Source of the DNA: Sminthopsis crassicaudata
Taxonomy: Eukaryota
DNA: 64,000 nt
Reading direction: 5' to 3'
NCBI RefSeq assembly: GCF_048593235.1
Contig: NC_133619.1
Span: 651,040,558-651,104,557, forward strand
Of the stretch, positions 1,257 through 42,664 are shown one piece after another. The notes below the pieces were generated by a model, which ran no database searches, was not told the origin of the DNA, and saw only the letters and a list, made by a program, of their open reading frames with translations. Every line of letters starts with the position of its first letter. Position 1 is the first letter of the stretch. The translations under genes and the position numbers were made by a program.

Positions 1257-4200
1257 ATGAGCCCTGCCCTCTCTATCCTGCTATGCCTTGGTGAGTCGTA
1301 AGAACCCCACAATGGAGGGGACCTTACAAAGCCCCAATTTCAGCCCGCCCAACCCCATTTTGTGGGGAGAAGTGGCCTGACAAGTCAGAGATCAGCCAAC
1401 AAGATGGGGGAGGGGGGAGCTGGAAGCCCGGGGGGTCCCTGAGCCAGCTCTGGCTCCTGTCTCCTTGCTCCGGGGGTGCTGGGCGGGGAGGGTGCGGGCG
1501 CTGACCCACAGTAATCAGGCTCCTCTCTGCCAGGGCTGTGTCTGGGCCACAGGATGAGGGTGCAGGCGGGTGAGTCCTTCCCCCCAGAGCAGACAGCTCC
1601 CCCGGGGAGGGAGGTGGGGGCGGTCTGGGCTGCACTGGCAGGGCTTGAAGGGGGGACCCGGTTTGGGGGGGCCCAGAGCAGGGGGATCCCCTGGAGCTGA
1701 CAGCTCTCATTCCCTTCCAGGCCCGCTTCCCAGACCCTCCCTCAGGGCAGAGAATGGGCCACTAGGGCCCCTAGGGAGAAGGGTGAGCTTCAGGTGCCGG
1801 GGGTCACCGGGGATTGCTGAATACCTTCTAGAGAAAAAGCTGGGACGTGAATTAAAAGTTATAGACTACATGCTGTCAGAGGAAGCTGAGGTCAACTTTT
1901 CCATCCCAAAGATGACACTGAAAGATGCAGGAATCTACTTCTGCCACTATAGAACAGCTTCGCACTGGTCAGAGCGCAGTAACTTCCTAGAGCTGGTGGT
2001 CACAGGTGAGGAAGTCCAGGTCCCTCTGCCCCTCAGGCAGGGCCGGCGCAGGGTCCCAGAGGCCCCTGAACTTCTCCCCAGCCCAGCCTGGTCCCAAGCT
2101 GCCGTCTGACCCTGCCCTTCTGCCCTTTCCCTTGTTCCTGCCTCTGCTCTGCCTCTGGGCTAGAAGTGGGGGAAGGGAATCAGCATTTATGGCAGCACCT
2201 ACTGTGTGCCAAACATTTTGCATTATTATGCCATGAGAGCCTCATAATAACTCTGCCAGCTGAATGCTATCCCATCTTACAGGTGGGGAAACTGAGGTGA
2301 ACAGAGAGGAAGTGACTAGTTTAGGATCATCTTGCTGGAAAATGTCTGAGGCTGGATTTGAACTCAGGATCTTCATGACTCCAGGCCAGGGCTTTAGCCT
2401 CTGGGTCTCCAGCTCCCTCAATCAGCTCCTATTTGGGGGCATTGTGGAGGCAGGAGGCTCAGCTTGGGGCTCAGGAGCCCAAATAGAGCTGTTGGTTGCC
2501 TGGGGAGGAGGCACGGGGCTGATGGGTCCTTTCCCCCTCTCAGCCCTGACCCTCTCAAGCCAGAGGAGGGGCCTGGTGCTGCTCTGTGCCCTCCCACAGC
2601 TCAGACCTGGGCACAGGGAGGGGAGGGGGTGTCACCTCTGGGTAGCTCCAGGGTCTCTTTGGGACTTCAGGTAGGAGGGAACTGGGAATCCCAGCCAAGC
2701 CTCTTATTGTCCATCCCAGGCACCTGCCCAGGGTCCACAGTGAGAGCAGCCTCTGCTTGGGGGTCATAGCCCAGCCCCCTTCCAGGGAGGAAGCCTCCCG
2801 GACCATGGTTCCTTCCCCAGAACTGACCCAAATTTGTGTCTGTCTCTGAATGTCCCTGTCCCTTGTCTTTCTCTTGGTGTCTTTTTCCGTCTGTCTTTCT
2901 TTGCTCCTCCCTCTCCCCCATCTCTTCCTCTCTTCCTCCCTCACTCTCTCTGTCTCTCCCCCTCCTCTCTCTCTCTCTGTCTCTCCCCCACTCTCTTTCC
3001 TTCTCTCTCTTCCTGCCCTCAGGCTTTTTCCCTCCCCCTACTCAAGCACCCACTTTCCTCTCTTCCCCCAGAGGTTTCCAAGGCACTTTTTTTACCCAAA
3101 ACCCTACAATATTTGTATTATTCTGGATGTGAGTTGAATCTCCAACCCATCCTGGGGTCCAGGCAGGCCTAGGCCACCTCCTAGCAGTAAGGATCTGCCC
3201 CCCCCAAAAAATAGAAGCCTTACAGCCCTAACTCCAGCCCCTCCCCCCAGAGCGGTACCACCCGCCCTCCCTCTCAGCCTGGCCCGGCTCCACGGTGGCC
3301 GAAGGACAGAACGTGAGCCTCCAGTGCCGGGCCGAGAAGGGATATGACCGCTCTGCCCTGTACAAGGACGGAGAACAAGTCACCAAAACCACGGCCCAGC
3401 TCCAAGGACGGGGCTCTCAGGCCAGTTTCCTCATCCCTGCTGTAACTTCTGCCCACGGAGGGACTTACCGATGCTTCAGCTTTCAGAGTCGCTCCCCCCA
3501 TGAGTGGTCATTCCCCAGTGACCCCCTGGAGCTCAGGGTCACAGGTGAGAGACCCCGGCCCTCCCCCTTCCTCCCAGCCCTTGTAAGCTTCCTCCCTGGT
3601 CCTGGGGCACCAGGCTGCCTGCTCAGAGCACTGCCCTAGGGGCCCCCAGGGGCCAGCAGGGCTGGGGGGGGGTGAAGCACAGAAGGAGGGCACAAAGGAT
3701 CTGGGCAATGGTTGGGGCTCAGAGAAGGCAGGCCCTGGGGCCTCTGCTCCATGGCCCGTCTGGACTCCTCCCCCTTAGCGGCCAGTCCAGTTACCCACAC
3801 ACAGATAAGCTCTCTCCAGGTCCCAGGAAAGGGGTTGAGGAGGGCAGAGAAGGGGTGAGTCAGTGGGGGAGAGTAATACCCACAAGCCCTTCTTTGTTTC
3901 AGGAAACTCAAAGGATCCTCCCCTCCCCCACAGCCCTGGAGACACCCAAGCTCTGACAGCCTCCCCACCCAGTGAGTAACCAGGCATCCTCAGCACAGGG
4001 GGGGAGTCCCTCTCCCCTCTTCCTCTCCTGCTGTTGCTGCCTAAGCCAAGGCTCCCTCCTGTCTCTGAGAATGAGGAGGGATGGAGGGCTGGGACACAGC
4101 CAGGAGGAACTTCAATTGGGGAAGGAGGAAGATCCCGGCCAGCCAGGAAGGGGGCTGGGGAGGGCGGAGCAGAGATGGGGGAGGCAGCCCCAAGTCTGCT

Positions 4201-5791
4201 CCCTTCTCTATCCTTTTCTGGAGCCCCTGTCCCCCCCCCCATGCAGCCACAGCAGGGACGACGGGGAGGGGCTCTGCTTCTGCCATCCCTGCTTCCCCAC
4301 TGATGAGGGAGGGGTTACTCAGATGCCCTCAGCCCAATTCCTCTAAGCTGGAAGTGATAGGGCCCAGCTTCTGGGAGGAATGTAGCAGTAATCCTGAGGC
4401 CCCAGAGCTTCAGAGGGCTACTGTTCTGACAAGCTGTCATTGTCCCTAAAGCTTCCTAACTTCAGGAATGCTGTGATAATCTCCTGCAAACTTTCCTGAC
4501 TGCCAGACAACAATCTCTGGGGCTGTGACATTAGGGTTTCTGAGACAACTGGTGAGGTGCATACCAGACCCCTCCCCAGTTCTGCTCCTGGGCCATAAAA
4601 TTAGCAGATCCACCGGTGACATGAAGAACCAGATCTGTCTTTTCCTGTAAAATTATCTTCTTGCTCCTGGTTCTTTGCTAAATCCCTCTGAAACTTATCC
4701 CACTTCAATTAGCTTACAAGTATGTGAATGTTGGCCTTTGACTTGGAGATGGGGTCAAACCTGCAAATTCTTTTGGGACACCTTGAGACCCCAGTCTGTC
4801 ATGGGCCAGAACTCTGGAGAAGTATCCTGAAGGCTCAGTATGATTGATTTAGTGTTACAATAAGGGGTTAACTCAGTGCAATTGATGAGACAATGGTTAT
4901 CTAGTCTTACATGTACTTGGTACTTCATATAGTATCCGTCCCAAGATATCATCCATATAATGTAACAATATTACTTTTGGAAAGGCTTTTCTTACTGGAG
5001 CATGAGCAGCAGCAACATACATTTGGCACGTAGTAGGGCTGTTTTTTCATTCCCTGTGGCAAAACTGTCCATTCATATCTTTTCTAAGGCTCAGCTAGTT
5101 AACTAAGTTAACGCTGGGCACTGAGAAGGCAAAACTTTTCATATCCTCCTTATATTGAGGAATAGAATAGAAACAATCCTTAACGTCTATAACCCAAGGA
5201 GGCCATTCTCTAGGCAACTGAGTAGGAGATGGAAGTCCAGGCTGAAGAGTTCCCATAGTTTCCATCTGTTCATTTACTCTTCTTAGATCAGTTAACATCC
5301 TCCCTTTTCCAGATTTCTTTCTTACAACAAATACTGGGGAATTCTAAGGACTTAGAGAAGGTTGTAAGTGTCCTTGGTCAAGTTCCTCCTGTCCTATATC
5401 TAATAAGGCCTGAACTTTTTCACTTTGAAAGGGCCACTGTTCTAGCCACACTGGTGTATCAGTTTTCCTTTGAATGGGAACAGGTGAGAGTGTGGGCAGT
5501 CCTTCACCTGCAGCCCTGCCTAAAAAATGGAGGAAGCTGAGGAATCCTGCCCCCACTGATGGGGGCCTGAGATCTGGGGGTCTTGTGCCTCTCCCAGTGA
5601 CTTCTCTCCTCCTCCCAGATCCTGCACCCCAAGATTACACGGTGGGCAACGTCATCCGCCTCAGCCTGGCCGGGCTGGTGCTCATCCTCCTGGGGGTCCT
5701 GCTGGCTGAAGCCTGGAATAGCTCCAAGGGACACCCAGGGGGAGCTCCTGCACCTTCTGATACAAGGGAAGGTAGAGCTGGGGGGCACTGA
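1257..5791 (+). CDS. Receptor A: activating two-Ig LRC-family (GP6/LILRA-like) receptor, about 296 aa
   Basis: Exons 1257-1290 ([11 protein letters not shown]), 1534-1569 (36-nt mini-exon), 1721-2005 (Ig D1), 3251-3544 (Ig D2), 3903-3971 (Pro/Ser/Thr stalk), 5619-5791 (TM and tail). All GT-AG, phase 1, 891 nt open. [31 protein letters not shown] has the Arg typical of FcR-gamma-coupled LILRA/GP6/OSCAR/FCAR. No Tyr motif in the tail. Confidence 0.88.
2180..2390. mobile_element. MIR/Mar1-like SINE remnant in receptor A intron 3
   Basis: Core-SINE-like motifs cccatcttacaggtggggaaactgagg and ggatttgaactcagg. Similar remnants near 26100-26220, 37010-37130, 39360-39410, 39670-39770 and 48520-48550. 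Confidence 0.45.
2860..3010. repeat. CT-rich low-complexity tract in receptor A intron 3
   Basis: (CT)n/(CTCCC)n-like sequence; the ORFs over it are compositional artefacts. Confidence 0.85.
4797..4935 (+). mobile_element. 5' fragment of an LTR of the same family as 25376-26086
   Basis: Starts tgtcatgggccagaactctg (vs tgttatgggccagaactctg at 25376) and shares gagacaatggttatct. Confidence 0.6.
4941..5500 (-). pseudogene. Betaretrovirus-like (class II ERV) reverse transcriptase fragment
   Basis: Minus-strand translation gives [44 protein letters not shown] and [10 protein letters not shown] (YMDD at 4948-4959). Contains stops and a frameshift in an A-run near 5042-5047. Confidence 0.9.
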
Positions 5792-7745
5792 AGGTGCAGA
5801 TTCCAAAGACTCTGGGAGTTCTGCCCACACCCAGACAGGAAGGATCCAGCATTTGGGGGGTCTGCACCAATCTCATCATTTGGTGGCGAGTGTCCACACC
5901 ATCCCCATCAAGGGTATGGCAGGAGCAATCCACCTGAGCCTCCTCTTGCATGCCTTTGGCCATCCTGGCTCTGGGGCCCTAAGCCCACCCTGACCAGCAG
6001 CAGGACCTCTGCTTCCCCCCACAACCTCTCCCAAATCAGATTCCCCACGCCCAGGACAAGCCTTCCCTCAGCTGGCCCGGCCCACAAACCCTCTCTGCCC
6101 CGAGCTCTCCTCACGTCTGCTGCCTGCAGTTGCAGACCCGGCTTCCTGAGGTGCACAAGAAGGCATCTGCACCCCTGGGTTCCTGAGGAGACCAGAGTCA
6201 ACCTTCCTGTGGGAATCTGAAGGAGCTGCCCTTGCTTCCACCTGTAGCTGGCCTTCATCACAGCTTGAGGCTCTTGTCTCAGATGCTAAACATGCCCCTT
6301 GCCCATGACCACCAGTGTCCCCAGAGGGCGCCCTTCACCCAAGGGGCGGAAGTCCCAATTCTCTCCTCAAAGGTCCAGATTTTGCTCCATGGCCCTGCCT
6401 GGGGGAGTCAGTGAAGGGGGAGAGATGAGACATGCACTCCTCTAGCATCCAGCTGCTGAAGAACAGCACCATTCCAGTCCCTGCCAGGAAGAAGCACCCA
6501 GGACAGGAGCTGCCCATCTCCACTGGCTCCCTGGGGGAATTTCCCCTTGGCTGAGACCTAGTGCTCCTTCTTCTGGCTGAGCTGAGCCACCTCCTTCTCA
6601 GGGGGAAAAAGACCTTTACCCATTTACCTGCCCCATGTGCTCCCATGGATCCCTTCTTTCACTTCTGTGGTGCTGTACCCCTGGATAAATGGTTCTTTGC
6701 TATTGGCTGAGAGTATTCACTGTGGAATAGGCATCTGGAGGGAAGAGAGCCCAGCCTTCCACAGGTAGCTTGGGGCTCTCTTTGCCCACTGAGGGATAGA
6801 GACCAGGAGTGCTTAAAGCTAAAAGGCATTTGTGAGCCACCTATAGAATTGTGTTTCCATAAATGGACAAAGACAAAGGTCACATCCGCTGAACAAGTTA
6901 GTTGTACAAAAGAAGCTTTCGAGCTTCTAAACTCATAGACTGACCAAAAATCACCCCAAAACAAGAAGAGGGAAAGGCAACTGCAAGCACTGAGTGGGCA
7001 TGCTTAATGAGTCAATCGGCAATCCCAAAGGAGGAGCTTCTGCCATTTTGAACATGGATTGCCTGATGAGGGAGAGTTAACATGTCAAAGAAGAACATGC
7101 AATGGGAAGACCAGGAAGGCTGTTAACTTTGTCCTCCCCAGCCAGTTGGGGTGATGAGGGAGAGACTCTGCTTCTGGATAAGAAATAAAAGGCTCAGTCC
7201 TGCATCTATAAGTATGGAACCCCCACTATTTTTTACAAGAACCATAAATAAAGCAATGCACTTGTGCAAAAATGTTATTGCAGTCCTAAGTCACAATTAA
7301 GACATAGGTGAAGGCCACATTCCCATGAAATGCCTTCCCTCAGTTTATCCCATTCACCAGTAAAAAACATAAAAGGAATAAATTCTCTCTTCATTCCTGA
7401 GTGGAATTAGGATCTGAGATGGGAAAATCTTAGAGTTAAATGGCCAGAGCCCCTTTCTACCAATGTGGCATGGCTTCAAATAAGGAACAGAATAAATGAA
7501 GTCATATATAATTCCAACTTTAATTCAACCTCCACCTGAATTAGCTGCCTTGGCAGAAAACATAGCAAAAAGCAATGGTGCTGAATTGATACCGATAGCA
7601 CAACAAACCAAATATTTGAGTGATTAAAAAAGATAAATCTAGTAAAGAATCTGACTTTTGCCTTTTGTTCCTCTTGCAAGTGTTATTCTTATACTCATTG
7701 GCTTAGTCCCTTGTGCTTTTGGGTGTGTCTTAAAAAGGGGGAAGT

Positions 7746-8235
7746 TGTAGAGGGCCAGTAAGTCCATGAACTACCTGTTCCATCCATGTGCTAGCAGCAC
7801 TTGCCTGGTCTACAAGGTCAAGGTGTCCTATCCTCTGCCTTGGTTGCAAAGAAGTAGTGAGCCTGCCACACATCAATCCTCAACTGCACAGAGTGTGTCA
7901 CACCTGCAGGGCTTATTATCTGCTTTCTGCTAACCCACTGCATAATTTAGGGAGTTAATTATTTTCACCTTTACTAGAAAATTAAGAGGAAACTACAACT
8001 ATCTGGCTATTACTTGGGAACATTCTAAAGCTGTTAACTAAGATTTGTGGAGTTATTATCATGTTAAACCTAAAACTGGTCATTATTGTGTGTGGAGCAG
8101 GAGGGAAGAGGTGAAAGAAGCCTCATCAACTAACCTTCAAGAATGAGAGTGCAGCAGGCTTTTCTCCCTTCACGGAGGTGGGCGGCGCTATCAAACAGCA
8201 CAGCCCACCAAAGCTTTAAGAAGAATGGGGGGTGG
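7746..8235 (+). mobile_element. Probable ERV 3' LTR remnant preceded by a polypurine tract, interrupted by L1
   Basis: aaaaagggggaag (7732-7744) followed by tgtag. A hydrophobic env-TM-like stretch (VILILIGLVPCAFGCVL) lies just upstream. Right boundary uncertain. Confidence 0.4.
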
Positions 8236-10365
8236 CCAAAGACTCTGCTAAAAAGCTATTAGAAATAATTCAGAACTTTAGCAAAGTTGCAGGATACAAA
8301 ATAAATCCACATAAATGCTCAGCATTTTTATACATCACCAACACAATCCAACAGCAAGAAATACAAAGAGAAATTCCATTCAAAATAACTGGCGATAATA
8401 TAAAATATTTGGGAATGTATCTACCAAAGGAAAGTCAGCAATTATATAAGCAAAATTACAAAACACTTGCCACAAAAATAAAGTCAGATTTAAATAATTG
8501 GAAAGACATTAAGTGCTCTTGGATAGGCCGAGCAAATATAATAAAGATGACAATACTCCCTAAACTAATCTATTTATTTAGTGCTATACCAATCAGACTC
8601 CCAAGAAACTAGTTTAATGACCTAGAAAAAATAATAACAAAATTCATATGGAAGAACAAAAGGTGGAGAATTTCAAGGGAAGTAATGAAAAAAAATTAAA
8701 TGAAGGTGGTCTAGCTGTACCTGATCTAGAACTGTATTATAAAGCAACAGTCGCCAAAACCATTTGGTATTGGCTAAGAAATAGACTAGTTGATCAGTGG
8801 ACTATGTTAGGTTCAAGATAGTGAATAAAAATAGCAATCTAGTGTTTGACTAACCCAAAGATCCCAACTTTTGGGATAAGAATTCATTATTTGACAAAAA
8901 GTGCTGGGAAAACTGGAAATTAGTATGGCAGAAACAAGGCATGGACTCACACTTACCACCACATACTAAGATAAGATCAAAATGGGTCCATGATTTAGGC
9001 ATAAAGAACGAGATCATAAATAAATTAGAGGAACAGAGGATAGTCTACCTCTCAGACCTGTGGAGGAGGAAGGAGTTTGTGCCCAAAGGAGAACCAGAGA
9101 TCATTATTGATCACAAAATAGAAAATTTTGATTACATCAAATTAAAAAGCTTTTGTACAAACAAAACTAATGCAAACAAAATTAGAAGGGAAGTAACAAA
9201 TTGGGAAAACATTTTTACAGTTAAAGGTTCTGATAAAGGCCTCATCTCCAAAATATACAGAGAATTGACTCTAATTTATAAGAAATCAAGCCATTCTCCA
9301 ATTGATAAATGGTCAAAGGATATGAATAGACAATTTTCAGATGATGAAATTGAAACTATTTCTAGCCATGTGAAAAGATGCTCCAAATCACTATTAATCA
9401 GAGAAATGCAAATTAAGACAACTCTGAGATACCACTACACACCTGTCAGATTGGCTAAGATGACAGGAACAAATAATAATGAATGTTGGAGGGGCTGTGG
9501 GAAAACTGGGACACTAATACATTGTTGGAGTTGTGAAAGAATCCAGCCATTCTGGAGAGCAATCTGGAATTATGCCCAAAAAGTTATCAAACTATGCATA
9601 CCCTTTGACCCAGCCATACTACTACTGGGCTTATATCCCAAGGAAATACTAAAGAAGGGAAAGGGACCTGTATGTGCCAAAATATTTGTGGCAGCCCTTT
9701 GTGTAGTGGCTAGAAACTGGAAAGTGAATGGATGTCCATCAATTGGAGAATGGCTGAATAAATTGTGGTATATGAATGTTATGGAATCTTATTGTTCTGT
9801 AAGAAATGACCAGCAGGATGAATACAGAGAGGCTTGGAGAGACTTAAATCAACTGATGCTGAGTGAAACGAGCAGAACCAGAAGATCATTATACACTTCA
9901 ACAACAATACTGTATGAGGATGTATTCTGATGGAAGTGGAAATCTTCAACATAGAGAAGAGCTAATCCAATTCCAATTGATTAATGATGGACAGAATCAG
10001 CTACACCCAGAGAAGGAACATTGGGAAATGAGTGTAAACTGTGAGCATTTTTTGTTTTTCTCCGCAGGTTATTTTTACCTTCCGAATCCAATTCTTCCTT
10101 TGCAACAACAACAACAACAACAACAAAATTCGATTCTGCACATATATCTTGTACCTAGGATATAGTATAACATATTTAATATTATGGGAATGCCTGCCAT
10201 GTAGGGGAGGGGATGGAGGGAAGAAGGGGAAAAATTCAGAACAGAAGGGAGTACAAGGGATAATGTTGTCAAAAATTACCTATGCATATGTACTGTCAAA
10301 AAATGTTATAACTATAAAATTAATTTTAAAAAATTAAAAATAAAATAAATTAACACTGAAAAAAA
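8236..10365 (+). mobile_element. 5'-truncated L1 (3' part of ORF2, 3' UTR, poly-A)
   Basis: ORF2 fragments 8232-8612 and 8941-9930 (CWRGCGKTGTLIHCW). Same family as the full-length L1. (CAA)n in the 3' UTR. Imperfect TSD aagaagaatggggggtgg / aagaagagtggaggtgg. Confidence 0.95.
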
Positions 10366-11520: not shown

Positions 11521-12019
11521 ACCCCAAGGAGAGATGAGCAGCCCTCACACTGGAGGAGGAGTTTCTCCCTCAGCACCCCATACACCCCAACAGAGGGAAT
11601 CCTGTCCTGGGACCTGACCCTCCAGTCTGGGACAAGCTGGGAGAGGGAATCCCAGACCTCCCATGTACAGAAGGCAGAGGCCCAGGCAGTCCTGAGGATG
11701 GGCTGGAGCCAACAAGTTCTTGGGGAAACTCCAGAACAGACCCTCCCCCCACTCCTGGGCCCTAAGGCAGCAGCTCCCCAAGCAACCCCCCCATCAGCCC
11801 CTTATTTGAAGGTTTAGTTTTAACTCCTTAGTGACCAGCACCCAGGAAGGCTCTGCTGGGCTGGGGACTGAGCCCAGTCTCAACGAGCCATGGCTGGGAG
11901 TAGGGTTCATGCTGATGACAGAATCTGGGTCCAGGGTCAGATTCATAGACCCTTGGGGAGCTCAACACTGCCATTTGGGAGAGGCAGGGGTCTGTGAGGC
12001 TGACACACAGGCTTCCCTG
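11521..12019 (+). repeat. Segmental duplicate of the receptor A upstream region (distal promoter half of receptor B)
   Basis: Aligns with 1-116 plus 661-1025. Continues at 24129 after the provirus. The whole duplicated unit is about 1-6340 vs 11521-30260. Confidence 0.9.
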
Positions 12020-12675
12020 TGTATTTCCTATTGATCTGTGACTCCTTTCAGATTCCCAGCCCCTCCTGGCTGAGGCATATCCTCCCCAGACAAGTTGTCT
12101 TTCTGGGATGCCAGAGCCTTTGGTTCACAAATCCTGGTCAAAAGCCTCCCTTTGAATTCCAATAGGAGATCTGGGCTTGTCCCAGCCCCCACTGATTCTG
12201 ATCTGCTCAGGCTTCCCAACCCCCACAGAGACAAGCAACTAAGGCCTTTGCAGATGGAGCTCAGCATCTTCCTTTGCTGCCAGGACCTTCTGCCCACTGA
12301 GAACTGCATTCTCAGTGCAAAACTCCATTTTCCATAGATCTGCCTGCTGGAATAATATTCTCTTCCAGTACCATCCTCTCCTTATCCTCATCTTTTTCCC
12401 TAACCAAACTTTATGCCTCTCTATCAGGATTTCTAACCTTAATTCCAATCCCGTAATAAGCCTCTTTTATCAATCTAGGTTTTCGGATTTGGAAATTCCT
12501 TTACAGAGAAACTCCGCCAGAAGGGAGTCCCCAAAATTCCAAGGTATCTAGGGGAGCTAAACCTCTCTATTTGGTTCCCTGAACCCCAAACCTGCCACTA
12601 GACCTTTTCATTTAACTCCCTGACCACCAGAAACCCTAATCTCATTTTGGTTCCCTAAATCTAAACCTCATCATT

Positions 12676-12693
12676 TAGTTTCCTGACGGGATC
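12676..12693 (+). promoter_or_regulatory. Degenerate primer binding site complementary to the tRNA-Glu 3' end
   Basis: LTR-CA, then tt, then tagtttcctgacgggatc, vs the expected TGGTTCCCTGACCGGGAATC. Confidence 0.65.
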
Positions 12694-15600
12694 CCCCAAA
12701 ACTAGACATCATTTGGTTCCCTAACTAGAACCCCAAAACTCTGGACATTCAGAACCAATTCGGGTTTTGAGCTGTTGGTGCAGTATTCTTCCAGAAAGAA
12801 TACCTGCGTTCCTTCTTTTGTCTCTATTTCTAAAGGTAGTGGGCACCCAGATCAGATCTGGGCTGTGGGCAATATTCTCCCAGGGAGAATATTTGCATTT
12901 TCTGGCAAAAAGGCCTCTTTTTGTCACACTATTTTTAAAGATAGTGGCACCAGGAAATCTGGAACTCTGGACAAGGTAAAAGAACTTTTTTTCTTTCCCT
13001 ATCCTGCAATGGACACCTAAGCCACCCAGGTCAGGCTTGGGTCATTGTTAGAGCTCTACATTCGGGCAAATTATTTACAAATTGCTGTGGATTGACAGAA
13101 GGCCTCCTTTTGTCTCACTCTGTCTCTAGAGATATGAGAGAAACTGCAAGAATTTGGGAAAACTAAAAGCTTTTATCTGTCCACAATCTAGACACACCTC
13201 TGCCTCTAAAATCCTTCCTTGAGCAGATGCTTGGCTTGAGGAAACTCCTTCTGTCCAACCCCTCCAGACCAAAGGAGGGTCCTTTGCATCTCAAGGCACT
13301 CCTAAATTCCTTTTTCTCTCACTAGAAAGCCCTGCTCTCAGGCAAGAACTCCAAGACAAGAGAGGAAGTGTCTCTTTAACCCTCCCCCCAGACCAAGGAG
13401 ATACATGGCAGTTCTGGGGCCCCCTCTCGGGGGTCCTAGCCCAGCACTCTCTTTGATCTGGAGAGATAACTGGAGAAACTTAAGAGGAGTCGAGTTTGAG
13501 CCCTTCTCCCACTCCACTGTTAAATACAATGGAGTCTTTAATGGTCAGGCTGTAGCCACGAGGAGAAAGGTCACTGAATTGAGGTGAGCCTGGAGACATG
13601 TCTCTACCCACGGCTGCTACTCCCTGGATAGGAGTAAACAGTCTCTCCTTCAGATCTTGCTCTCCTGGCAAGATTTGGGAGTTCAGACGAGCTTCCCCAC
13701 TCTCAAGTTCCAACGTGAAATTGCCAGAGGAACCCTCGCTATTTGGGAAGCACCGGGTAAGACTGCATTTCTTTCTCCCCCACCCTCACTCTGGCCTTTC
13801 CTCCCCCTCCCCCATGGAGTGGGGATCACAGAACTCAAGGCCTTTTTCAGACCTCTCCCATATGGCTTGGCAACCTGCCATTTAAATGTTTCTGTCCTGT
13901 CCCCTTATTGGGGTACTGTACAGTGGGGAGATTGGGCACTCAGTCTTATCTTCTCAAGTCTCCAGAAAAGTTTTCCACCAATTTTTAAAACAGAACTTTC
14001 CTGGCATTCTGGACAAGCGGGCCACGCCCCTCCCAGACCTTTTAGCTGGCCCTTAAATGAGCCGCAGCTTCCAGCCCTCAGGAAGCAAGTTTGTCCCATA
14101 CATTTTAAAACGGGACTTGGTTTCCTCAGATCAGGGCCTCCCATCACAGCCTTTTAACTGCAGAAGCCTCAAAACTATGTTTTTGCATGCTCATGTTTAC
14201 AAAGACGGGGGATTCCAAAGTGCTCTCGGGTTTTTTTTCCTAGTCTCAGGGCACTTGCTCCTAATTTTCTCGGCCCCAAGACCTTTTGTTCTTAGCACAC
14301 TCTCCTATTTTTCTGGATTGGCATTCTATGCCCCTGCCAACAATTAAAGCTTTCTATCCTAAGCTCCAACCCTGGCCAGATTGTGGCTTCAAGAAAGACA
14401 TTTGGAATGCTTGATGTCTGGGGAATAAAAGTTCAAATCAAAGCAAATTCAATTGTTTAGAGAGTGAAGAGAGTTTCTTTCTTTCTTTTCTCATTCTCTG
14501 ACTGTAGCAGGAAATGGGGAGTTAGAGAGAGAGATTGAAACTGTTTGAAAACTCCTTAACCATTTTCAATTCGGTGAACACTTTTAAGGAAAGAGGTCTT
14601 TCCTGTTGCCTTTTCTCTAGCTTGCAGAATTCCCTTGTGGGAATTCCTGTAGTGTCTCTCTCTAGACTTGTTCTCTATTCTACAGCTGGTCCCTGACAAA
14701 TTCTCCCTTGCTCTGTTGTTCCTCAGTTTCTCTGGCATTACAGCTCAAGGAGCATTTTGTTGCTCTCCTTCTCTAGAGAAGGACGAGGGACTATAGAATC
14801 TGGACACTGTCTAGAGTCAGGCAAGGAGCTATTGATTGGAGAACACTAAAGCTTTTTTCCTAGAAGTCAAGGATTTCAGTCTTCTGATTTCATCATTTGG
14901 TGGCCCTTCTACCAGGCTTTGCCCATGAGGGTTTTTTTTTCCACTGAGGTAAGCCCACCACATCACCCTCTATAGCGGGGTCAGCTCAAATTCCCCAAGG
15001 GTCACAGGCGGAGCTGTCCAGAGCTTGACCTCGGTTCGGATTTGGGTCAAGATCGCTTGAACAAATTTCTGCAGATTAACAAATAGCCCTCTTACTGAAG
15101 AGTCACACCTTCCTAGGGATGCCTGGAGAAGGACAGAGCTATGGAAGTGGAAAGTTTGGGGCTTGTGGCAGGATGGGTCAGCTTTCTTCCTCCATTCCTA
15201 GAGATTCTCTTTTAAGCTGTCTCTTAATGCAGAGACACACTCAGCTTGAAAAAAATACCTCAATCCCAAAACTTAAACTCTGACTAGATTAGCTGAATTC
15301 CAGTCTCCCTCCACCCACCAACTCTCAGGAGCCCTAGAAAGGAGACTTCTTTGCACTTTAAAAGGGACGCTTTTTTCTTTCAAATCCTGGAACTAACATT
15401 TCTGCCCTCAGGCAAAAAACGGCTAGCCCACAAGCCCAGCAGAATTGTCTCTTTCAAAGCTAAAAAAATCTCCCAGCCTAAGAAGAAACCTGGGACCCAC
15501 CCCCAACTTTTTCAGGGGTACAAGGCCAGTATACTAAGGCCAAAACTAGAGGAGCCCATTCTGAGCCCTCGATGCTACACTCTGCTGCTACAAACAGCTG

Positions 15601-20782: not shown

Positions 20783-21237
20783 CCTACTAACCCCTGCTTA
20801 TGCTTTTCCCCTTTCCTTCCCTTTTACCCTCCTATCCAGTATTAAACTGGTGAACACCACTTGCTTTTCACAGCCCTCCCTTTTTAGGATCCCTCCCCCA
20901 CCTTAAAGATCCTCCCCTTATTTTACCCCTTTTCCTCGAAATTACTGTATTCCCTTCCCCTTAGCTTACTCCTTCCCTTTCACTTTTCAATGAAGTGGAA
21001 GAAGTTTCACCATAAATCGAATATGTCTATTGATACACGCTATGTTCATCTCCCTCCTTTCTTTTTCTCAGATATAATAGGTTACCTTTGCCTCTTCATG
21101 AGATGTAGTACCACCACTTTATACTTTTTTATGATATAATCTCCTTTCCACCTCTAGTTTCTAAGACAAATTGTACATATGTTCTTTACATATTTTTTTG
21201 ACAGAAGTATAGTTCTCAAGATTTCTTTTTACCTTTT

Positions 21238-27400: not shown

Positions 27401-29686
27401 CCCTCCTCCCTCCTCTCTGTCTCTCCCCACTCCTCCCTCTCTCTCTGTCTCTCCCCCCTCCTCCCTCTCTCTCTGTCTGCCTCTCCCCCTCCTCCCTCCT
27501 CTCTNNNNNNNNNNNNNNNNNNNNNNNNNNNNNNNNNNNNNNNNNNNNNNNNNNNNNNNNNNNNNNNNNNNNNNNNNNNNNNNNNNNNNNNNNNNNNNNN
27601 NNNNNNNNNNNNNNNNNNNNNNNNNNNNNNNNNNNNNNNNNNNNNNNNNNNNNNNNNNNNNNNNNNNNNNNNNNNNNNNNNNNNNNNNNNNNNNNNNNNN
27701 NNNNNNNNNNNNNNNNNNNNNNNNNNNNNNNNNNNNCTCTCTGTCTCTCCCCACTCCTCCCTCTCTCTCTGTCTCTCCCCCCTCCTCCCTCCCTCTCTCT
27801 CTGTCTCTCCCCCCTCCTCCCTCTCTGTCTCTCCCCTTCCTCCCTCTCTGTCTCTCCCCCCTCCTCCCTCTCTCTCTGCCTCTCCCCCTCCTCCCTCCCC
27901 TCTGTCTCTCCCCCACTCTCTTTCCTTCTCTCTCTTCCTGCCCTCCGGCTTTTTCCCTCCCACTATTCAAGCACCCACTTTCTTTTCTTCCCCCAGAGGT
28001 TTCCAAGGCCTTTTTTTACCCAAAAACCTCTAATATTTGTTTATTCTGGACGTGAGTTGAATCTCCAGCCCATCCTGGGGTCCAGGCAAGCCCAGGCCAG
28101 CCTCCGGCGGCCAGATCTGCCCCCACAGAAAAGGGGCTTTACAGCCCTAACTTCAGCCCCTCCCCCCCCCCAGAGCTGTACCACCCCCCCTCCCTCTCAG
28201 CCTGGCCCGGCTCCACGGTGGCCGAAGGACAGAACGTGAGCCTCCAGTGCCGGGCCGAGAAGGGATATGACCGCTCTGCCCTGTACAAGGACGGAGCACC
28301 GGTCACCCAGGCCTCGGCCCAGCCCCATGGACGGGGCTCTCAGGCCAATGTCTCCATCCCTGCTGTGACCTCTGCCCACGGAGGGACGTACCGCTGCTAC
28401 AGCTTTCAGAGCCACGCCCCCCATGAGTGGTCAGCCCCCAGTGACCCCCTGGAGCTCAGGGTCACAGGTGAGAGACCCCGCCCCCTTCCTCCCAGCCCTC
28501 CTAAGCTCCCTCCCTAGTCCGGGCACCTCGCTGCCTGCTCAGGGCCCTGTCCCAGGGGTCCCCGGGGGCCAGAAGGACTGGGGGGTGAGCTTCAGAGCAG
28601 GCAGGGTCTGAGTAATGGGTAGGGCTCAGACAATGCAGACCCTCGGGCCTCTGCTCCCTGGCCCTCTAGCCTCCCTCACCATCTCCCACCGCCCACTTCT
28701 GCTGGTCCCCCATATGTCTCCTGGGTCCCAGGTAAGGGGTTCAGGAGAGAGGAGCAGAACTGGGGTATAGCCAGAGGGTAAATACCCACAAGCCCCTCAC
28801 CCTTTCCCTCTCCCTGTACCGGACACCTCCAGCACCCTGGGAATCCCCAGCTCTGACCCCCTCCCCACCAGCGAGGAGGGGTGGGAGTCTCTGATCCTCT
28901 CCTGCTCCTGCTGCCTAAGCCAGGGCTGAGTCTCCCCCCTGTGTGGGAGCAGGGGGAGGGACGGAGAGCTGGGACAGGCAGGAGGAACTCCAAGCCAGGG
29001 AAGGAGGAGCATGGCTGGCCTGGGAGGGGGCTGGACATGTGGGAGCAGAGATGGGCAGGGCGGCCCCAATTCTGCTCCCTTCTCTCTCTTCCCCATTCCT
29101 CCCGGGGGCCCCCACCCCTCCCCCATGCAGCCATAGCAGGGACTATGGGGAGGGGGCTCTGCTTCTGCATCCCTGGCGTGGCCAGGCTCACACAGAGAGG
29201 AAGTGTCTGAGGTGGGATGGGAACTCGCCTCTTCCTCACCACAAGCTCTACCCACTCCCCAAGCTGTTGCCAACATGGTGGGAGATGAAGAATGAGGGGG
29301 AGGAGAGGAAGTGAGGGCCAGGGGGATCTGGGCCTGACTCAGGGGCCTGCAGAGGAAGCCCTGAGGGGGAGCAATAGGGGAAGGAAGCTGCCTGAGCCCC
29401 TCCCTCAGCCCCATCCCCAGGCTCCCAGCCCAGGGAGAGGGGCTGGGGCTGAGCCTGGGGAGAGCTGAGGAATCCTGCCCCCACTGACGGGGGCCTGAGA
29501 TCTGGGGGTCTTGTCCCTCTCCCAGTGACTTCTCTCCTCCTCCCAGATCCTGCAGCCCAGGATTACACGGTGGGCAACGTCATCCGCCTCAGTCTGGCCG
29601 GGCTGGTGCTCATCCTCCTGGGGGTCCTGCTGGCTGAAGTCTGGAATAGCTGCAGGGAACCCAGGGGGAGCTCCTGCACCTTCTGA
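24417..29686 (+). CDS. Receptor B: activating two-Ig LRC-family receptor, paralogue of A, about 262 aa
   Basis: Exons 24417-24450 (Kozak accaccATG), 24670-24705, 24856-25140, 28174-28467 and 29547-29686. GT-AG, 789 nt open. [31 protein letters not shown] with Arg. Intron 3 contains an assembly gap. Confidence 0.87.
25376..26086 (+). mobile_element. Solo LTR in receptor B intron 3
   Basis: TG...CA termini, TATA-like catataag near 25547, AATAAA 25980-25985. Empty site in receptor A at about 2240 (gagagcctc ataataac). Imperfect 6-bp TSD agcctc/atgctc. Confidence 0.85.
25843..25928 (+). mobile_element. 5'-truncated marsupial SINE (WSINE1-like) inside the solo LTR
   Basis: ctggctgtgtgaccctgggcaagtcactta core, A-rich tail, exact 15-bp TSD aagaaagctgcccca (25828-25842, 25929-25943). 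Confidence 0.8.
26750..27930. repeat. Expanded CT-rich tandem repeat (ctgtctctcccccctcctccctct-like units) containing the assembly gap
   Basis: Many imperfect copies of about 24-30 nt. N-run at 27505-27736. The homologous tract in A is only about 150 bp. Confidence 0.92.
27505..27736. other. Assembly gap (232 N)
   Basis: Run of n characters inside the CT repeat. Confidence 1.
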
Positions 29687-32030: not shown

Positions 32031-32052
32031 GGTAATGTTCTCTTCTCTAAAT

Positions 32053-32340
32053 TGTAATCGTTCTCTTGGGGGCAGGTTTCTTGGGGAGCTTCTGGAGGCA
32101 GCCTTAGTTTCAGTTCAGTTCATTAGTCCCAAATGCAGCCAGGAGTTAAAGTCTAAATCCTTTATTGTCTCTTCCAAAATCTTATCTCCTTCACTTGGGG
32201 CTCATTTTCTGGAGGTCTTCCTCTCTCCTTGGTTCCTGAGAGCTCTTGTCCAAATGTCTCCAACCAGCACAAACATGGAACTTGGAATGACTTGACTGAA
32301 TCTCCTAGAGTATAGAATTGTGGGTTTCTGCCTTGTGAAT
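32053..32340 (-). mobile_element. LTR 3' fragment related to 25376-26086
   Basis: Reverse complement matches the 3' end of that LTR (gcagccttagtttcagttcag; gttaaagtctaaatcctttatt). Confidence 0.65.
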
Positions 32341-33009: not shown

Positions 33010-36000
33010 AAAAAATTGCCTTTATGATTTCCTTGGGATACAGACCTAGTAGTGATACTGCTGGATCAAGGGAATGCAGAGTCAGATACCCTTTGGGCAT
33101 AATTCCAAATTGCTCTCCAGAATGGTTGGATCTGTGCACAGTTCCACCAACAATGTATCAGTGTCCCAGTTTTCCCACATCCCCTCCAACATTCTTCATG
33201 ATCTTTTGTCATATTAGCCAATCTGAAAAGTGTGAGATTGTAGCTGTGTTATTTTAAGTTGTATCTCTCTAATCAATAATGATTTAGAACATTTTTTCAT
33301 ATGACTATACATGACTTTAATTTCTTCACCTGAAAATTGTCTGTTCATATCTTTGACTATTTATCAGCTAGAGAATGACCTCTATTCTTATAAATTTTAT
33401 TCAGTTCTTTATGTATTTTAGAAACGAGGTCTTGATCAGAAACACTAGATGTAAAAATTTTTTCCCAGTTTTCTGCTTCCCTTCTAATCTTGGCTGTATT
33501 GGTTTTATTTGTTCAAAAACTTTCTTAATTTAATGTAATCAGAGTTATCCATTTTGATTTCATAATGTTCTTTAGTACTTCTTTGACCATAAATTCCTCC
33601 CTTCTCCAAAGATCTGATAGGTAAATTATCCCTTGCTCTTCTAACTTGTTTATAGTATCATTTTTTATGCCCAAATCATGTACCCATTTTGACCTTATTT
33701 TGGTATGAGGTATGAGAAGTACATCTATGCAGAGTTTATAACATTATTTTGCAGTTTTCCCAGCAATTTTTGTAAAATTATGAGTTCTTTCAGCAACTGG
33801 AGTTTGGGATTTATCAAATACTAGATTGCTATAGTCATTATTATGTCATATGCAGAATTCCACTGATTCTCCATTCTCTCTTAGCCAGTACCAAAGGGTT
33901 TTGATGACTCCTGCATTATAACAGAGTTCTAGGTCTGGTACTATTAGGGAACTATTTCTTAATTCCCTTAGTATTTTTTTTTCTTTTATTCTTCCAGATG
34001 AATTTTGTTACCATTTTTCCTAGCTCTGTAATTTTGGGGGAGTTTGATTGGTATGGCACTGAACAAGTAGATTAACTTGGGTACCATTGTCATTTTTATT
34101 ATATTATCTCAGCCTACCCATAAACAATTTATATTTTTCCAATTGTTTAGATCTGAGTTTATTTGTGTGGAAAGTGTTTTCTATGGACCTACATTTAACA
34201 CCACATACTAAGATAAGATCAAAATGGGTCCAAGATTTAGTCATAAAGAACGAAATCATAAATAAATTGGAGGAACATGGGATGGTTTACCTCTCAGACT
34301 TGTGGAGGAGGAAGGAGTTTGTGTCCAAGGGAGAACTAGAGACCATTATTGATCACAAAATAGAAAATTTTGATTACACCAAATTAAAAAGTTTCTGCAC
34401 AAACAAAACTAATGCAAACAAGATTAGAAGGGAAGTAACAAATTGGGAAAACATTTTTACAAGTTAAAGGTTCTGATAAAGGCCTCATCTCCAAAATATA
34501 CAGAGAATTGACTGTAATTTATAAGAAATCAAGCCATTCTCCAATTGATAAATGGTCAAAGGATATGAACAGACAATTTTCAGATGATGAAATTGAAACT
34601 ATTTCCACTCATATGAAAGAGTGTTCCAAATCACTATTGATCAGAGAAATGCAAATTAAGACAACTCTGAGATATCATTACACACCTGTCAGATTGGCTA
34701 AGATGACAGGAACAAATAATGATGAATGTTGGAGGGGCTGTGGGAAAACTAGGACACTGATGCATTGTTGGTGGAGTTGTGAAAGAATCCAACCATTCTG
34801 GAGAACAATCTGGAATTTTGCCCAAAAAGTTATCAAACTATGCATACCCTTTGATCCAGCAGTGCTACTCCTGGGCTTATATCCCAAGGAAATACTAAAG
34901 AAGGGAAAGGGACCTATATGTGCCAAAATGTTTGTGGCAGCCCTTTTCATAGTGGCTAGAAACTGGAAAATGAATGGATGCCCATCAATTGGAGAATGGT
35001 TGGGTAAATTATGGTATGTGAATGTAATGGAATATTATTGTTCTGTAAGAAATGACCATCAGGAGGAATACAGAGATGCTTGGAGAGACTTACATCAACT
35101 GATGCTGAGTGAAACGAGCAGAACTAGGGGATCATTATACACTTCAACAATGATACTGTATGAGGATGTATTCTGATGGAAGTGGATATCTTCAATATAG
35201 AGAAGAGCTAATCCAATTCCAATTGATCAATGATGGACAGAATCAGCTACATCCAGAAAAGGAACACTGGGAAATGAGGGTAAACTGTGAGCATTGGTTT
35301 TTTTTGTTTTGTTTCTCTTCCCAGATTATTTTTACCTTGTGAATACACTCCTTCCTTTGCAACAACAACAACAACAAAATTCGGTTCTGCACATATATAT
35401 TGTACCTAGGATATACTATAAGATATTTAATGTATGGGAATGCCTGCCATCTAGGGGAGGGGGTGGAGGGAAGGAGGGGAAAAACTCAGAACAGAAGGGA
35501 GTACAAGGGATAATGTTGTAAAAAAAAAAAAAAAAAAAAAATTTACCTGTGCATATGTACTGTCAAAGAAAATGTCATAATTATAAAAATTAATAAAAAA
35601 CAAAATTTAAAAAAAAGTGTTTTCTAATTGTGTTCATATAGTTCCTATGTTTGTCCTGGCAGGTAGACACCCAAATATTTTATTTTGTCTACAATTATTT
35701 TACATGAATTTTCTCTTTCTCTTGTTGCTGGGATTTGGTAATAAAATACAGAAATACTAATGATTTGTATGGGTTTGTTTTATATTATGCAACTGGGCTA
35801 AAGCTGTTGATTGTTTCAAGTAGGTTTTTGAATGATTCTCTAGGATTCTTTAAGTATATCATGTATATGCAAAGAATGACAGTTTTATCTCTTCATTGTC
35901 TACTCTAATTCCTTTAATTTCTTTTTTTTTTTTCTTATTGCTGGAGCCAACATTTCTACTACATTATTGAATAATAGTTATAATGAACATGCTTGTTTCA

Positions 36001-37947: not shown

Positions 37948-40839
37948 ATGGCCCCCGCACACACTGCCCTGCTGGGCTTCGGTAAGTCCTGGGAAGTGGG
38001 AGAGCCATGATTCCAGAGGCAGCCTCAAAGCTAGACCTGCCTGGACCCTGCTCCGGGCCCAACAGAGCAGGAAAAGAAGGGCCAGTGAGAAGGGGCCCAG
38101 CCAGCACAGTAGCCGGGGTCCCCTGCTGCCTAAATGCCCCTTGAGTGTGGTGACAAACTTGGGGCTTCTGGGAGCCGAGTCTAATGACAGCCTGTCCTAC
38201 AGGGCTTTGTCTGTGCTGGGGGACCTGGGCACAACAGGGTGAGTCCTTGCCCCAGCTTCCTGCCCCTCCTGCCTGCTCAGCACTGAGAGCTGGGGGGGGG
38301 ACAGGGAAGGGGATACAAGGGGAGGGGGTCTGTGCTGATGGATGATTCTGGGAGGGGGTGGGGGAGGGGCTGAGAGGGGATCTCAAGGCTGATTCTCTTC
38401 CAGACACATTGCCCAGACCCTCCCTCAGGGCTGAGCCAGGCTTGGTGGTCCCCCAAGGGAATCCTGTGAACCTCTGGTGTAAAGGACCCCCTGGAGCTGG
38501 TGTGTACCACCTGAGGAAGAGAGGAAGCAATAATTTTGTGGAAGTTTTTCCAGCTGGGCTGGAAGCCTGGTTCACCATCCCTGAAATGGCAGCAAACACT
38601 GCAGGGAGCTACCAGTGTGTCTACTACTACCAGTCACGGTGGTCAGAGCCCAGTGAGCCCCTGGAGCTGAGAGTGTCAGGTGAGGAGGCTCTGGAGCCCC
38701 TGCGCCCCCAACCCCAGCAGGCCCTGTGGAAGCCGGGACAGGGAGAGGGGGGTGGGCCGGCCGCTGCTCTGTCCCTGTGCCGGCTCCAGCCTGGGCCCAG
38801 AGAGGGGAGGCTCTTCCTGTTCTCAGTCCCGGCTCTCCTGCTCCACCAGGGCTTTTCCCGGCACCCTCCCTCTCAGCCTGGCCCAGCTCCACGGTGGCTC
38901 CAGGACAGGACGTGACCCTCCGGTGCCATTCCCTGCTGTTCTTTGACTGCTCGGCCCTGTACAAGGACGGAGCACCGGTCACCCAGGCCTCGGCCCAGCC
39001 CCATGGACGGGGCTCTCAGGCCAATTTCTCCATCCCTGCTGTGAATTCCACCCCCGGAGGGACGTACAGATGCTACAGCTTTCAGAGCTACACCTCCCAT
39101 GAATGGTCAGCCCCCAGTGACCCCCTGGAGCTCAGGGTCACAGGTGAGACCCCGCCCCCTTCCTCCCAGTCCTCCTAAGCTCCCTCCCTGGTCCTGGGGC
39201 ACCCCTGTTTGAAGGGTCCCAGGACACATCAGGGAGGGCCGGGGCACCCAGAGGCCTGAGGGTGGGCAGGGCCTGGCCAGGTGTCTACTGCAGGGACTCT
39301 GCAGTGCAGAGGGAGGGGGCAGAAGTCTGCTTCTTTCTAACCATTCCCACCTCATGCTTATACTCCCATTGTACAGATGGGAAAGTGAGGCCCAGAGAGG
39401 GGAGGGACTTGCCCAGCACCCCAGAGGGTGAGCCAGGCAGAGCTTGTCCTGGGAACGTGAATCACAGAGGGCCCCGAAGGGCTCCCCTTGCGGGATGGAC
39501 AGCCGGGCTCTAGCTTTTCCCTCTTCCCTGACCGCATCCTTACCCCCCCTTCTCCCACCTCTGGACTTTTGCCCGAGCTGTGCTTGGCATATTTTCCTTA
39601 TTCACTCCCCTCTAAGGTTCACCTCCTACAAAATGTCTTTCCTGAAATCCCCGTTAATCCCTCATCATGTGACAGTTTTACAGATGAGTAAACTGAGGTA
39701 AAGTGCCAGTGACCCCTTCCCAGGGTCACACAGCTAGCAAGTGTCTGAGGCTGGACTGGACTCAGCTCCAAGTTCAGGGTGCGTGGCGCCGGCTGAGTGC
39801 TCCTGAAGGCTCCTCTCCCCTCCTCCCTCCCTTTGGGGAGGGGTCCAGGCTGGGCCTGCGCACCCCTACTGGCCTTCCTTCCCCACGGCGCCCCCACCCC
39901 TGGGCGCCAGCTGAGCACTTCAGTGCTTGCCTCCTGTCTCCCGCCTGCCTGGAGGGGAGAGGAGCCAGCAGGACCTCCGGGCCGGACCACCCAGACCAGG
40001 CCAGGCTCTGGAGTGCGCAGGGCTCGAGTGGCCGGCTCTGGGCCTCCCGGGGACCAGGCGGCCTTAATCTGCGCCCCCCCCCAGCTTCAGCCCCAGCTTC
40101 CTCGGGTCTCACGGCAAGCATCTTGCTGGGGGTCTCAGCGGTGCTCCTCCTCCTCCTCCTCCTCCTCCGCCGCCGCCATCGGGCCAGAATCAGTGAGTTC
40201 TTGGGGCTGGGGGCAGCCGGGCGGAGGGCCTGCACCCCAGGGAAGGCTGACCCCGACTCTCCCCACAGGCAAAGGGAGCAGAGAGGTCAAGAAGACCCTC
40301 AAGAGGTAGGAGCCCAAGATAGACCCGCCCCCACCGCCCCGCCCCCCTTCCCAGACCCTCCCCCACCGCCCCCCACCTTCCCAGACGCCCTCACTCTGCC
40401 TTCTTGTTCCCCAGCTCAGACCCGGCTGCGACCCCCATGGAGGAGAGACTGTGTGAGTGGGGGCAGGGCGGGAGGGGCTGGGGGGTCTGAGGGAAAGGCT
40501 GGGCCTGGGCGGAGCCGGGGTCCTGACCCCCCTCCCCCCCCCTCTGCCTCCAGACGCTGCTGTGGGGGATGGCAGACAGACAGAGGAGGCCAGACAGGAC
40601 GACACTGCCGTGAGTCTCTCAGCTGGGGGGGGGGAGGGGCGGCTTCCCAGGCTCACACGCAGCCGGGGGTCAGGGGTCAGGGTCCTCCCCCTGCTCAGCC
40701 CCCCCTCCCCTCCGGCCAGGCTCCCACCGGGGAAGACCCTCAGCAAGTGACCTACGCGCAGCTGAAGCTCGAGGCCGGGGCCGCGGACCCTCCGCGCTCT
40801 GGCCCAGCGGCGCCCAGCCTCTACGCGGCCCTGCGCTGA
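37948..40839 (+). CDS. Receptor C: inhibitory two-Ig LRC-family (LILRB-like) ITIM receptor, about 332 aa
   Basis: Exons 37948-37981, 38203-38238, 38404-38679, 38850-39143, 40085-40192 (uncharged TM then RRRHR), 40269-40305, 40415-40452, 40554-40609 and 40720-40839. Phases consistent, 999 nt open. Motifs RLYAAV, VTYAQL, SLYAAL. AATAAA 41173-41178. Confidence 0.88.

Positions 40840-41634: not shown

Positions 41635-42664
<1,030 letters not shown>

Follow-up and report, generated by a model that had tools for sequence, protein, structure and literature searches.

Three two-domain receptor genes next to RPS9 in the fat-tailed dunnart's leukocyte receptor complex

Three receptor genes beside RPS9

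The stretch of DNA analysed here (64,000 nucleotides (nt) in all, referred to as the window) comes from the fat-tailed dunnart, Sminthopsis crassicaudata, and spans ~651,040,558-651,104,557 on CM109183.1, covering a receptor part and its RPS9 flank. It is mammalian and contains a single run of N, at 27505-27736. Three plus-strand receptor genes, named A, B and C in order of position, were rebuilt from flank reading and exon assembly (Table 1), and a tblastn search with the first immunoglobulin (Ig) frames found exactly six Ig exons of the leukocyte receptor complex (LRC) type in the whole window, arranged as three pairs. Very probably, the window represents the part of the dunnart LRC closest to RPS9 and carries three receptors from a marsupial-specific expansion of the two-Ig (M1-M2, "MAIR") LILR/GP6-like kind, with A and B being of activating type and C of inhibitory type, and with A/B and C not forming a ligand-sharing pair.

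All three genes have a leader split into exons of 34 and 36 nt, followed by two phase-1 Ig exons, here called D1 and D2, and thereby display the split signal peptide and the phase-1 Ig exons of ~276-300 nt that mark LRC group A. The introns are all GT-AG and the assembled frames are open, at 273, 262 and 332 amino acids (aa) for A, B and C, with A counted without its stalk exon; this exon assembly confirms the split leader, two Ig exons, open frames and canonical splice sites of the original prediction. The six Ig exons all match Pfam Ig_2/Ig_3/ig, and in PDB they match LILRA6, LILRB3, PIR-B, LILRB1/2, GP6, NCR1, LAIR1 and KIR (E 1e-20 to 1e-60), with the D1 domains of LILRA6/LILRB3 as the top PDB matches for both the A/B and the C type of D1. 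In a tree of 180 Ig domains, the D1s fall in the A1-type (distal) half and the D2s in the A2-type (proximal) half, with a support of 99 for the split. A reading of the ectodomain as D1 plus D3, raised by best PDB stretches in which the D2 exons resemble LILR D3, was rejected, as the domain tree sets these exons beside GP6 d2 and LILR d2.

The transmembrane (TM) segments of A and B contain an arginine within the NxxR motif (defined in PMC6557307), and are followed by short tails that lack tyrosine and signalling motifs, as expected from sequences of the activating type. Over 29 aa, these segments are 69% identical to the TM of human LILRA2, and they are 52-53% identical to that of GP6. Gene C consists of nine exons from 37948 to 40839, with an uncharged TM exon and a tail containing RLYAAV, VTYAQL and SLYAAL, the last two of which fit the consensus (S/I/V/L)xYxx(I/V/L) of the immunoreceptor tyrosine-based inhibitory motif (ITIM), so that C has the uncharged TM and at least one ITIM of an inhibitory-type sequence. 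The first motif, RLYAAV, spans the exon 7/8 junction and is off consensus because of an arginine at -2; its position matches that of NLYAAV in LILRB1. The tail of C is conserved across marsupials and can be aligned to the eutherian LILRB3/LILRB4 tails with the same three tyrosine motifs. The arginine-containing TMs and tyrosine-free tails of A and B, as well as the neutral TM and ITIMs of C, had been read correctly from the DNA beforehand. By its encoded motifs, the gene C that RefSeq calls "GP6-like" is an ITIM receptor with a LILRB-type tail.

As was originally proposed, the genes are LRC receptors located where the complex borders RPS9. The expected flank of the LRC is RPS9-TSEN34-MBOAT7-TMC4-LENG1-CNOT3; in the window, RPS9 and TSEN34 are called beside C, and C ends ~800 nt from RPS9, which lies on the minus strand, in the tail-to-tail arrangement that had been noticed before.

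Table 1. Features of the receptor part and adjoining genes, in positions of the window
Feature	Position	Strand	Evidence or remark
A exon 1, leader, 34 nt, ATG at 1257	1257-1290	+	GT donor; identical in P0364
A exon 2, leader mini-exon, 36 nt	1534-1569	+	AG/GT sites; RNA joint 1569/1721 (run X6)
A D1 Ig exon, 285 nt, phase 1	1721-2005	+	Pfam Ig_2; best PDB matches LILRA6/LILRB3 D1; RNA contig
A D2 Ig exon, 294 nt, phase 1	3251-3544	+	Pfam Ig_3/ig/Ig_2; RNA joint 3544/3903
A stalk exon, 69 nt, phase 1-1	3903-3971	+	tblastn with Antechinus homologue P0038; AG/GT; RNA joints on both sides; in P0364
A TM and short tail, stop 5789-5791	5619-5791	+	NxxR, Tyr-free tail; terminal exon continues as 3' untranslated region to ~6400
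Insertion of ~12 kb splitting the A-like region upstream of B	12004-24136		Near full-length L1 (-) inside
B exon 1, 34 nt	24417-24450	+	Exon assembly
B exon 2, 36 nt	24670-24705	+	Exon assembly
B D1 Ig exon	24856-25140	+	Pfam Ig_2; fully identical (100%) to P0364 residues 765-859
Minisatellite in B intron 3, 28-nt period, CT-rich	26831-27935		Contains assembly gap 27505-27736
B D2 Ig exon	28174-28467	+	Mosaic: A-like, then C-identical tract
B stalk-exon remnant, decayed	~28822-28872	+	Without AG acceptor and GT donor
B TM and tail, NxxR	29547-29686	+	1-nt deletion relative to A alters tail; end of P0364
C exon 1, leader, 34 nt	37948-37981	+	Exon assembly
C leader mini-exon, 36 nt	38203-38238	+	Absent from RefSeq isoform X2
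C D1 Ig exon, 276 nt	38404-38679	+	D1 lineage other than that of A/B
C D2 Ig exon, 294 nt	38850-39143	+	Pfam and PDB matches
C uncharged TM exon, 108 nt, in frame	40085-40192	+	Absent from RefSeq isoform X3
C cytoplasmic exons 6-8	40269-40305, 40415-40452, 40554-40609	+	Identical in XP_074164188.1 and isoforms
C last coding exon, VTYAQL and SLYAAL, stop 40837-40839	40720-40839	+	AATAAA at 41173
RPS9 coding sequence	41635-42658	-	Called gene, 194 aa, Ribosomal_S4/S4 domains; tail to tail with C
TSEN34	48066-49855	-	Called gene beyond RPS9

Gene A is transcribed and spliced

Homologues in dasyurids carry a stalk of ~24 residues between D2 and the TM, and the matching 69-nt exon is present in gene A, which with this exon encodes 296 aa. 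The exons first listed for A were all recovered, although that list had missed the stalk exon and was to this extent incomplete. Four RNA runs of the same organism were aligned over 1050-7000 (the A region), and sampled words were present in these runs at 48-61% for the A region and 50-54% for the C region. In run X6, joints connect the leader mini-exon to D1, D2 to the stalk exon (Table 1) and the stalk exon to the TM exon (~3971 to 5619), and an A-specific contig that covers D1 from 1742 to 2005 with one mismatch extends into the first part of the A D2 exon. Gene A is therefore transcribed and spliced. The spliced transcripts that were named at the outset as a check were thus found for A at four joints (mini-exon to D1, D1 to D2, D2 to stalk and stalk to TM), and no B-specific transcripts were detected in the aligned runs. 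RNA coverage runs uninterrupted from 5619 to ~6420 with no joint at 5772, and a donor at 5772 that would lengthen the A tail was discarded, as the X6 coverage passes through it and only the fused RefSeq model P0364 uses it, to reach B.

A repeat occupies 4831-5626 within an intron of A and contains a minus-strand frame (5098-5343) that resembles a reverse transcriptase and matches Pfam RVT_1. The RNA contig over 4831-5626 has a depth of tens of thousands in three runs, far exceeding that of the flanking exons. This segment represents a highly transcribed repeat family and does not belong to gene A.

Divergent D1 and closely similar D2 exons

The two Ig domains of these receptors differ strongly in how far A/B and C have diverged. 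Between A/B and C, the D1s share 44-48% protein identity with a synonymous divergence (dS) of 0.95-1.38, whereas the D2s share 81-87% nt identity with a dS of 0.15-0.22. Among D1s of the A/B type, the ratio of nonsynonymous to synonymous divergence (dN/dS) is 0.7-1.6. In the domain tree, the D1s of A and B belong to a dasyurid clade (support 100) inside a marsupial lineage that includes opossum genes, and the D1 of C groups elsewhere, with a protein of the Tasmanian devil (97; 100/98 in a further, more careful tree). Each of the two D1 types is a separate marsupial lineage with opossum members. The marsupial D2s all cluster beside GP6 d2, with those of A, B and C in one dasyurid clade. The D2 exon of B is itself a mosaic, its first ~100 nt being almost identical to A and the following ~72 nt identical to C, and the same variant is seen in other paralogues.

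These data fit recent homogenisation of the D2 exons by exon-scale conversion within a multigene family in the cluster, with the D1s of A/B and C deriving from different, old marsupial lineages. In the tree comparison suggested with the original prediction, A/B and C thus fell in separate lineages for D1 and in a single dasyurid clade for D2.

Evidence weighing against this reading and the state of gene B

A number of observations weigh against the reading of the three genes as activating-type and inhibitory-type receptors. The gene models, domains and motifs, position, splicing of A and annotation of C were observed directly, whereas the functional roles come by homology. The RNA evidence consists of short assembled contigs in which the stalk and TM exons are indistinguishable from those of paralogues, with a C>G difference at 5627 in all runs, and contigs covering introns in three runs may represent pre-mRNA or DNA. 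For gene C there are two candidate starts, at 37867 (RefSeq) and 37948, the latter giving the canonical 34-nt LRC leader in a good Kozak context, and RefSeq isoforms exist that skip the TM exon (X3) or the leader mini-exon (X2). As modelled, isoform X3 would be a soluble ITIM-tailed protein, and the skip in isoform X2 would damage the signal peptide.

The remaining points of this kind concern gene B, for which the assembly gap lies between the D1 and D2 exons, the stalk exon has decayed, an insertion of ~12 kb leaves 281 bp before the ATG, and the runs aligned over 1050-7000 yielded no B-specific contig. These features, together with the loss of both splice sites of the stalk exon and a tail that is frameshifted relative to A and other paralogues, raise the possibility that B does not work as a receptor, being either a copy in decay or a chimera of the assembly. 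This is a possibility to be taken seriously, but we consider it the less likely one, as the 262-aa frame of B is intact with all of its splice sites present, the dunnart paralogue XP_074164199.1 is likewise modelled without a stalk, a direct D2-to-TM joint of the B/P0194 type occurs in RNA contigs, and the gap flanks align in order to the A intron. The joint in question was seen at another loose contig end, at which D2 leads straight into a TM exon like that of B/XP_074164199. Since the stalk stretch of B has neither AG nor GT, B runs directly from D2 to the TM.

The N run begins 2364 nt past the B D1 donor and ends 437 nt ahead of the B D2 acceptor, and the same 28-nt minisatellite unit is found on both sides of it (26831-27504 and 27737-27935). 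As it lies within this intron-3 minisatellite, between D1 and D2, the gap belongs to an intron and interrupts no reading frame. Its two flanks can be aligned, in the same order, with intron 3 of A, which is much shorter, and this colinearity supports, short of proof, that the two halves of B would lie on one molecule across the gap.

The insertion upstream of B was delimited by comparison with gene A, as the segment at 661-1009 upstream of A matches 11641-12004 and the segment at 1029-2243 matches 24136-25375. Inside it, Pfam identified the ORF1 (21241-22491) and ORF2 (17232-20797, endonuclease and reverse transcriptase) of an L1 element on the minus strand. Direct repeats of 196 nt, 93% identical, are located at 12257 and 23685. 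A provirus fits this insertion poorly, as Pfam returned L1 ORF1/ORF2 and no retroviral gag, pol or env was found in the open reading frames tested. LINE-like open frames are also seen in the A-B intergenic region (8220-9927) and the B-C intergenic region (34439-35173), with no Pfam match for the frame at 34439-35173.

Relationship to eutherian LILRB3/LILRA6

The RPS9-adjacent position raises the question of true co-orthology with eutherian LILRB3/LILRA6 for C, and perhaps also for A/B, with two Ig domains either retained or reached by reduction and with an RPS9-adjacent inhibitory gene older than the marsupial-eutherian split. Several results are in line with this, including the same position and orientation relative to RPS9, conserved in the Tasmanian devil, where a C-type model also ends ~0.8 kb from RPS9 in tail-to-tail orientation. 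The top PDB matches of both D1 types, the similarity of the A/B TM to that of human LILRA2 (69%) and the parallel between the RLYAAV/VTYAQL/SLYAAL motifs and LILRB tails point in the same direction, and an approximately unbiased (AU) test leaves a grouping of the C lineage with the eutherian LILR d1 clade unrejected (p 0.49; ~93 columns). In free trees, however, LILR d1 stands separate from the marsupial D1s, all of which cluster with GP6 d1 and LAIR1 (100/98), and the marsupial D2s adjoin GP6 d2. In addition, LILRB3/LILRA6 have four Ig domains as opposed to two in each of these genes, with no Ig exons beyond the six found by tblastn in the whole window. According to a review of primate LILRs, the centromeric LILRB3 block is an inverted duplicate of the telomeric block (PMC8562567), which makes simple positional orthology doubtful, and M1M2 genes have been related only to the eutherian group A as a whole (PMC6557307). 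On the present data we regard co-orthology of these genes with LILRB3/LILRA6 as rather unlikely.

A different proposal is offered tentatively. The C lineage, which is conserved between dunnart and devil, may correspond in marsupials to an ancestral RPS9-side LILRB gene that had a primitive two-domain (A1-A2) ectodomain and a LILRB-type tail, with the D2s in parallel being kept homogenised across D1 lineages. If so, LILRs with four domains, as well as the pair LILRB3/LILRA6, would have been elaborated later, in eutherians, and homogenisation of D2 across different D1 lineages would point to a function of D2 that is separate from ligand choice by D1.

The devil model XP_031817634.1 ("LILRB4", 650 aa; LR735556.1) includes the C orthologue and looks fused with an upstream Ig receptor gene.

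Probable pairing of activating and inhibitory receptors at the family level

It had been proposed that A and B are the activating counterparts of C, forming with it one paired module in which the activating copies see the ligand of C or something that mimics this ligand, and so serve as counter-decoys. The three genes are adjacent and share one architecture, their D2 exons are highly similar, and the D2 of B holds a tract identical to that of C, all of which would be expected of such a module. The proposal nevertheless appears improbable and did not hold up against the D1 data, as paired receptors in the strict sense have highly identical ectodomains and the membrane-distal domains of A/B and C are unrelated at the level expected of them, with the low D1 identity, the excess of D1 over D2 divergence and the separate D1 lineages, each with opossum genes, described above. 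Because the C-like tract in D2 is also found in other paralogues, C need not have been the donor to B.

Moreover, a better-matched inhibitory gene exists elsewhere in the cluster. The product of this dunnart gene, XP_074164187.1, is encoded outside the window, on the upstream side at ~240 kb from A and ~273 kb from C, and its ectodomain is 82-85% identical to A/B over residues 17-216. Its TM is uncharged and its tail, which contains SLYAAV, VTYAQL and SLYAAL, resembles that of C, and the gene thus combines high ectodomain identity to A/B with the opposite signalling module. By sequence, XP_074164187.1 is a better inhibitory partner for A/B than C, and activating/inhibitory pairing would exist at the level of the family, with A/B sharing their ectodomain type with an ITIM gene ~240 kb upstream. 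The paralogue XP_074164199.1, which is activating and stalkless, lies ~240 kb upstream of C.

In the mechanism that we consider likely on grounds of homology, A, and B if it is functional, would reach the cell surface and signal through pairing of the TM arginine with FcR-gamma, an adaptor carrying an immunoreceptor tyrosine-based activation motif (ITAM), and C would be phosphorylated on its ITIM tyrosines and then recruit SHP-1/SHP-2.

The name given by RefSeq to gene C suggests orthology to GP6, the platelet collagen receptor, and two Ig domains, D2s nearest to GP6 d2 and an NxxR TM in A/B would agree with it, but this is hardly credible, as the D1s of these genes lie outside GP6 d1, which forms its own fully supported eutherian clade (100), C carries ITIMs in its tail and no charge in its TM, paralogues are numerous in place of a single-copy activating gene, the locus adjoins RPS9, and another devil gene has been proposed as the GP6 orthologue (PMC6557307).

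Existing annotation

The annotation status of A and B was deduced from the called-gene table and from mapping of P0364, the 1003-aa RefSeq model. All three genes lie under RefSeq models, in which A and B are not separated as individual genes. Gene C is annotated as "platelet glycoprotein VI-like", with isoform models XP_074164188/89/91/92. The model P0364, named "paired immunoglobulin-like receptor B" (PIR-B), is a fusion of three tandem activating genes with three TM segments, in the order of a gene upstream of the window, A with its stalk exon, and stalkless B. The called gene of P0364 terminates exactly at the stop of B, and it joins A to B through the donor at ~5772 and an acceptor near 24228, with the leader of B read out of frame. 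This fusion is probably a read-through or merging artefact, and the tandem array comprises at least three activating copies, of which A and B come last. Marsupial LRC expansions are known to be poorly annotated by automated pipelines (Peel et al., PMC9618407).

When 1.84 billion representatives were searched with a profile of the three D1 exons, multi-domain or fused models dominated the result, and the usable yield was P0031 and P0038, which then served as full-length queries. P0031 is identical to C except for a 27-residue extension from the in-frame ATG at 37867 and the skipping of the 108-nt TM exon. A literature search on dunnart and LILR returned no match.

Comparison with known receptor systems

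The suggestion that this module may be uncharacterised is contradicted both by these RefSeq models over all three genes and by an existing description of the family. The two-Ig M1M2/MAIR family, with its NxxR TMs and its linkage to Rps9, was described in opossum and devil (Guselnikov & Taranin 2019, PMC6557307). In that work, M1M2 genes were found to be homologues of group A of eutherians, taken in its entirety, and to be linked with Ttyh1, Leng9 and Rps9, with NxxR in 45/74 opossum TM exons and a devil scaffold holding two LRC exons beside Rps9-Tfpt (PMC6557307). Like A, B and C, the MAIR genes of opossum and devil have an M1 followed by an M2 Ig exon, mixed NxxR and uncharged TM exons, and a large lineage-specific expansion. 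Dasyurid homologues are 66-78% identical overall to A/B, and a devil homologue is 68% identical to C. Marsupial LRC receptors of the MAIR/M1M2 kind are reportedly also attributed to Belov 2007 and van der Kraan 2013. Because paired two-Ig LRC receptors with arginine TMs or ITIMs were already described in marsupials, A, B and C do not represent a new kind of system and are further members of this receptor family.

Relative to the MAIR work, the species here is the dunnart, and gene-level structures, decay of the B stalk, D1/D2 mosaicism and the RPS9-adjacent C lineage were worked out at this locus only. What is gained is a gene-by-gene reading of the RPS9 end of the LRC in a species that is becoming a laboratory marsupial model, the separation of two activating genes which, in RefSeq, are merged with another one in a 1003-aa model with three TMs, and a record of exon-scale mosaicism that combines old D1 lineages with young D2 exons, all of which is useful for immune-gene annotation and reagent design.

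Human LILRB3/LILRA6 and mouse PIR-B/PIR-A resemble A, B and C in adjoining RPS9 tail to tail, in their 34 + 36 nt split leader and phase-1 Ig exons, in the NxxR TM of their activating members, and in an inhibitory tail with NLYAAV-, VTYAQL- and SIYATL-like motifs. They differ in having four Ig domains (six in PIR) with near-identical ectodomains within a pair, whereas A, B and C have two with a strongly divergent D1, and the marsupial domains fall outside the LILR clades in domain trees. GP6 is like A/B in its two Ig domains, in an NxxR TM that in GP6 pairs with FcR-gamma, and in being the tree neighbour of their D2s, and is unlike these genes in being single-copy, with its own D1 clade, no ITIM form and another position in the LRC. 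The eutherian two-Ig receptors LILRB4/LILRA5 share the two-domain ectodomain and occur in ITIM or arginine-TM versions, and several dasyurid paralogues are named "LILRA5" in RefSeq. However, the domains of pangolin LILRB4 cluster with eutherian LILR d1 and d2, apart from the marsupial domains, and LILRB4/LILRA5 are not adjacent to RPS9.

Genes of the flank

Beyond TSEN34, frames recognised by eye are taken by us to represent TMC4 (~57.5-59.1 kb, plus strand), LENG1 (60684-61900, plus strand) and the C-terminal NOT box of CNOT3 (62887-64000, minus strand). The G+C content is 62-72% in the flank (41635-64000) versus 33-56% in the receptor part.

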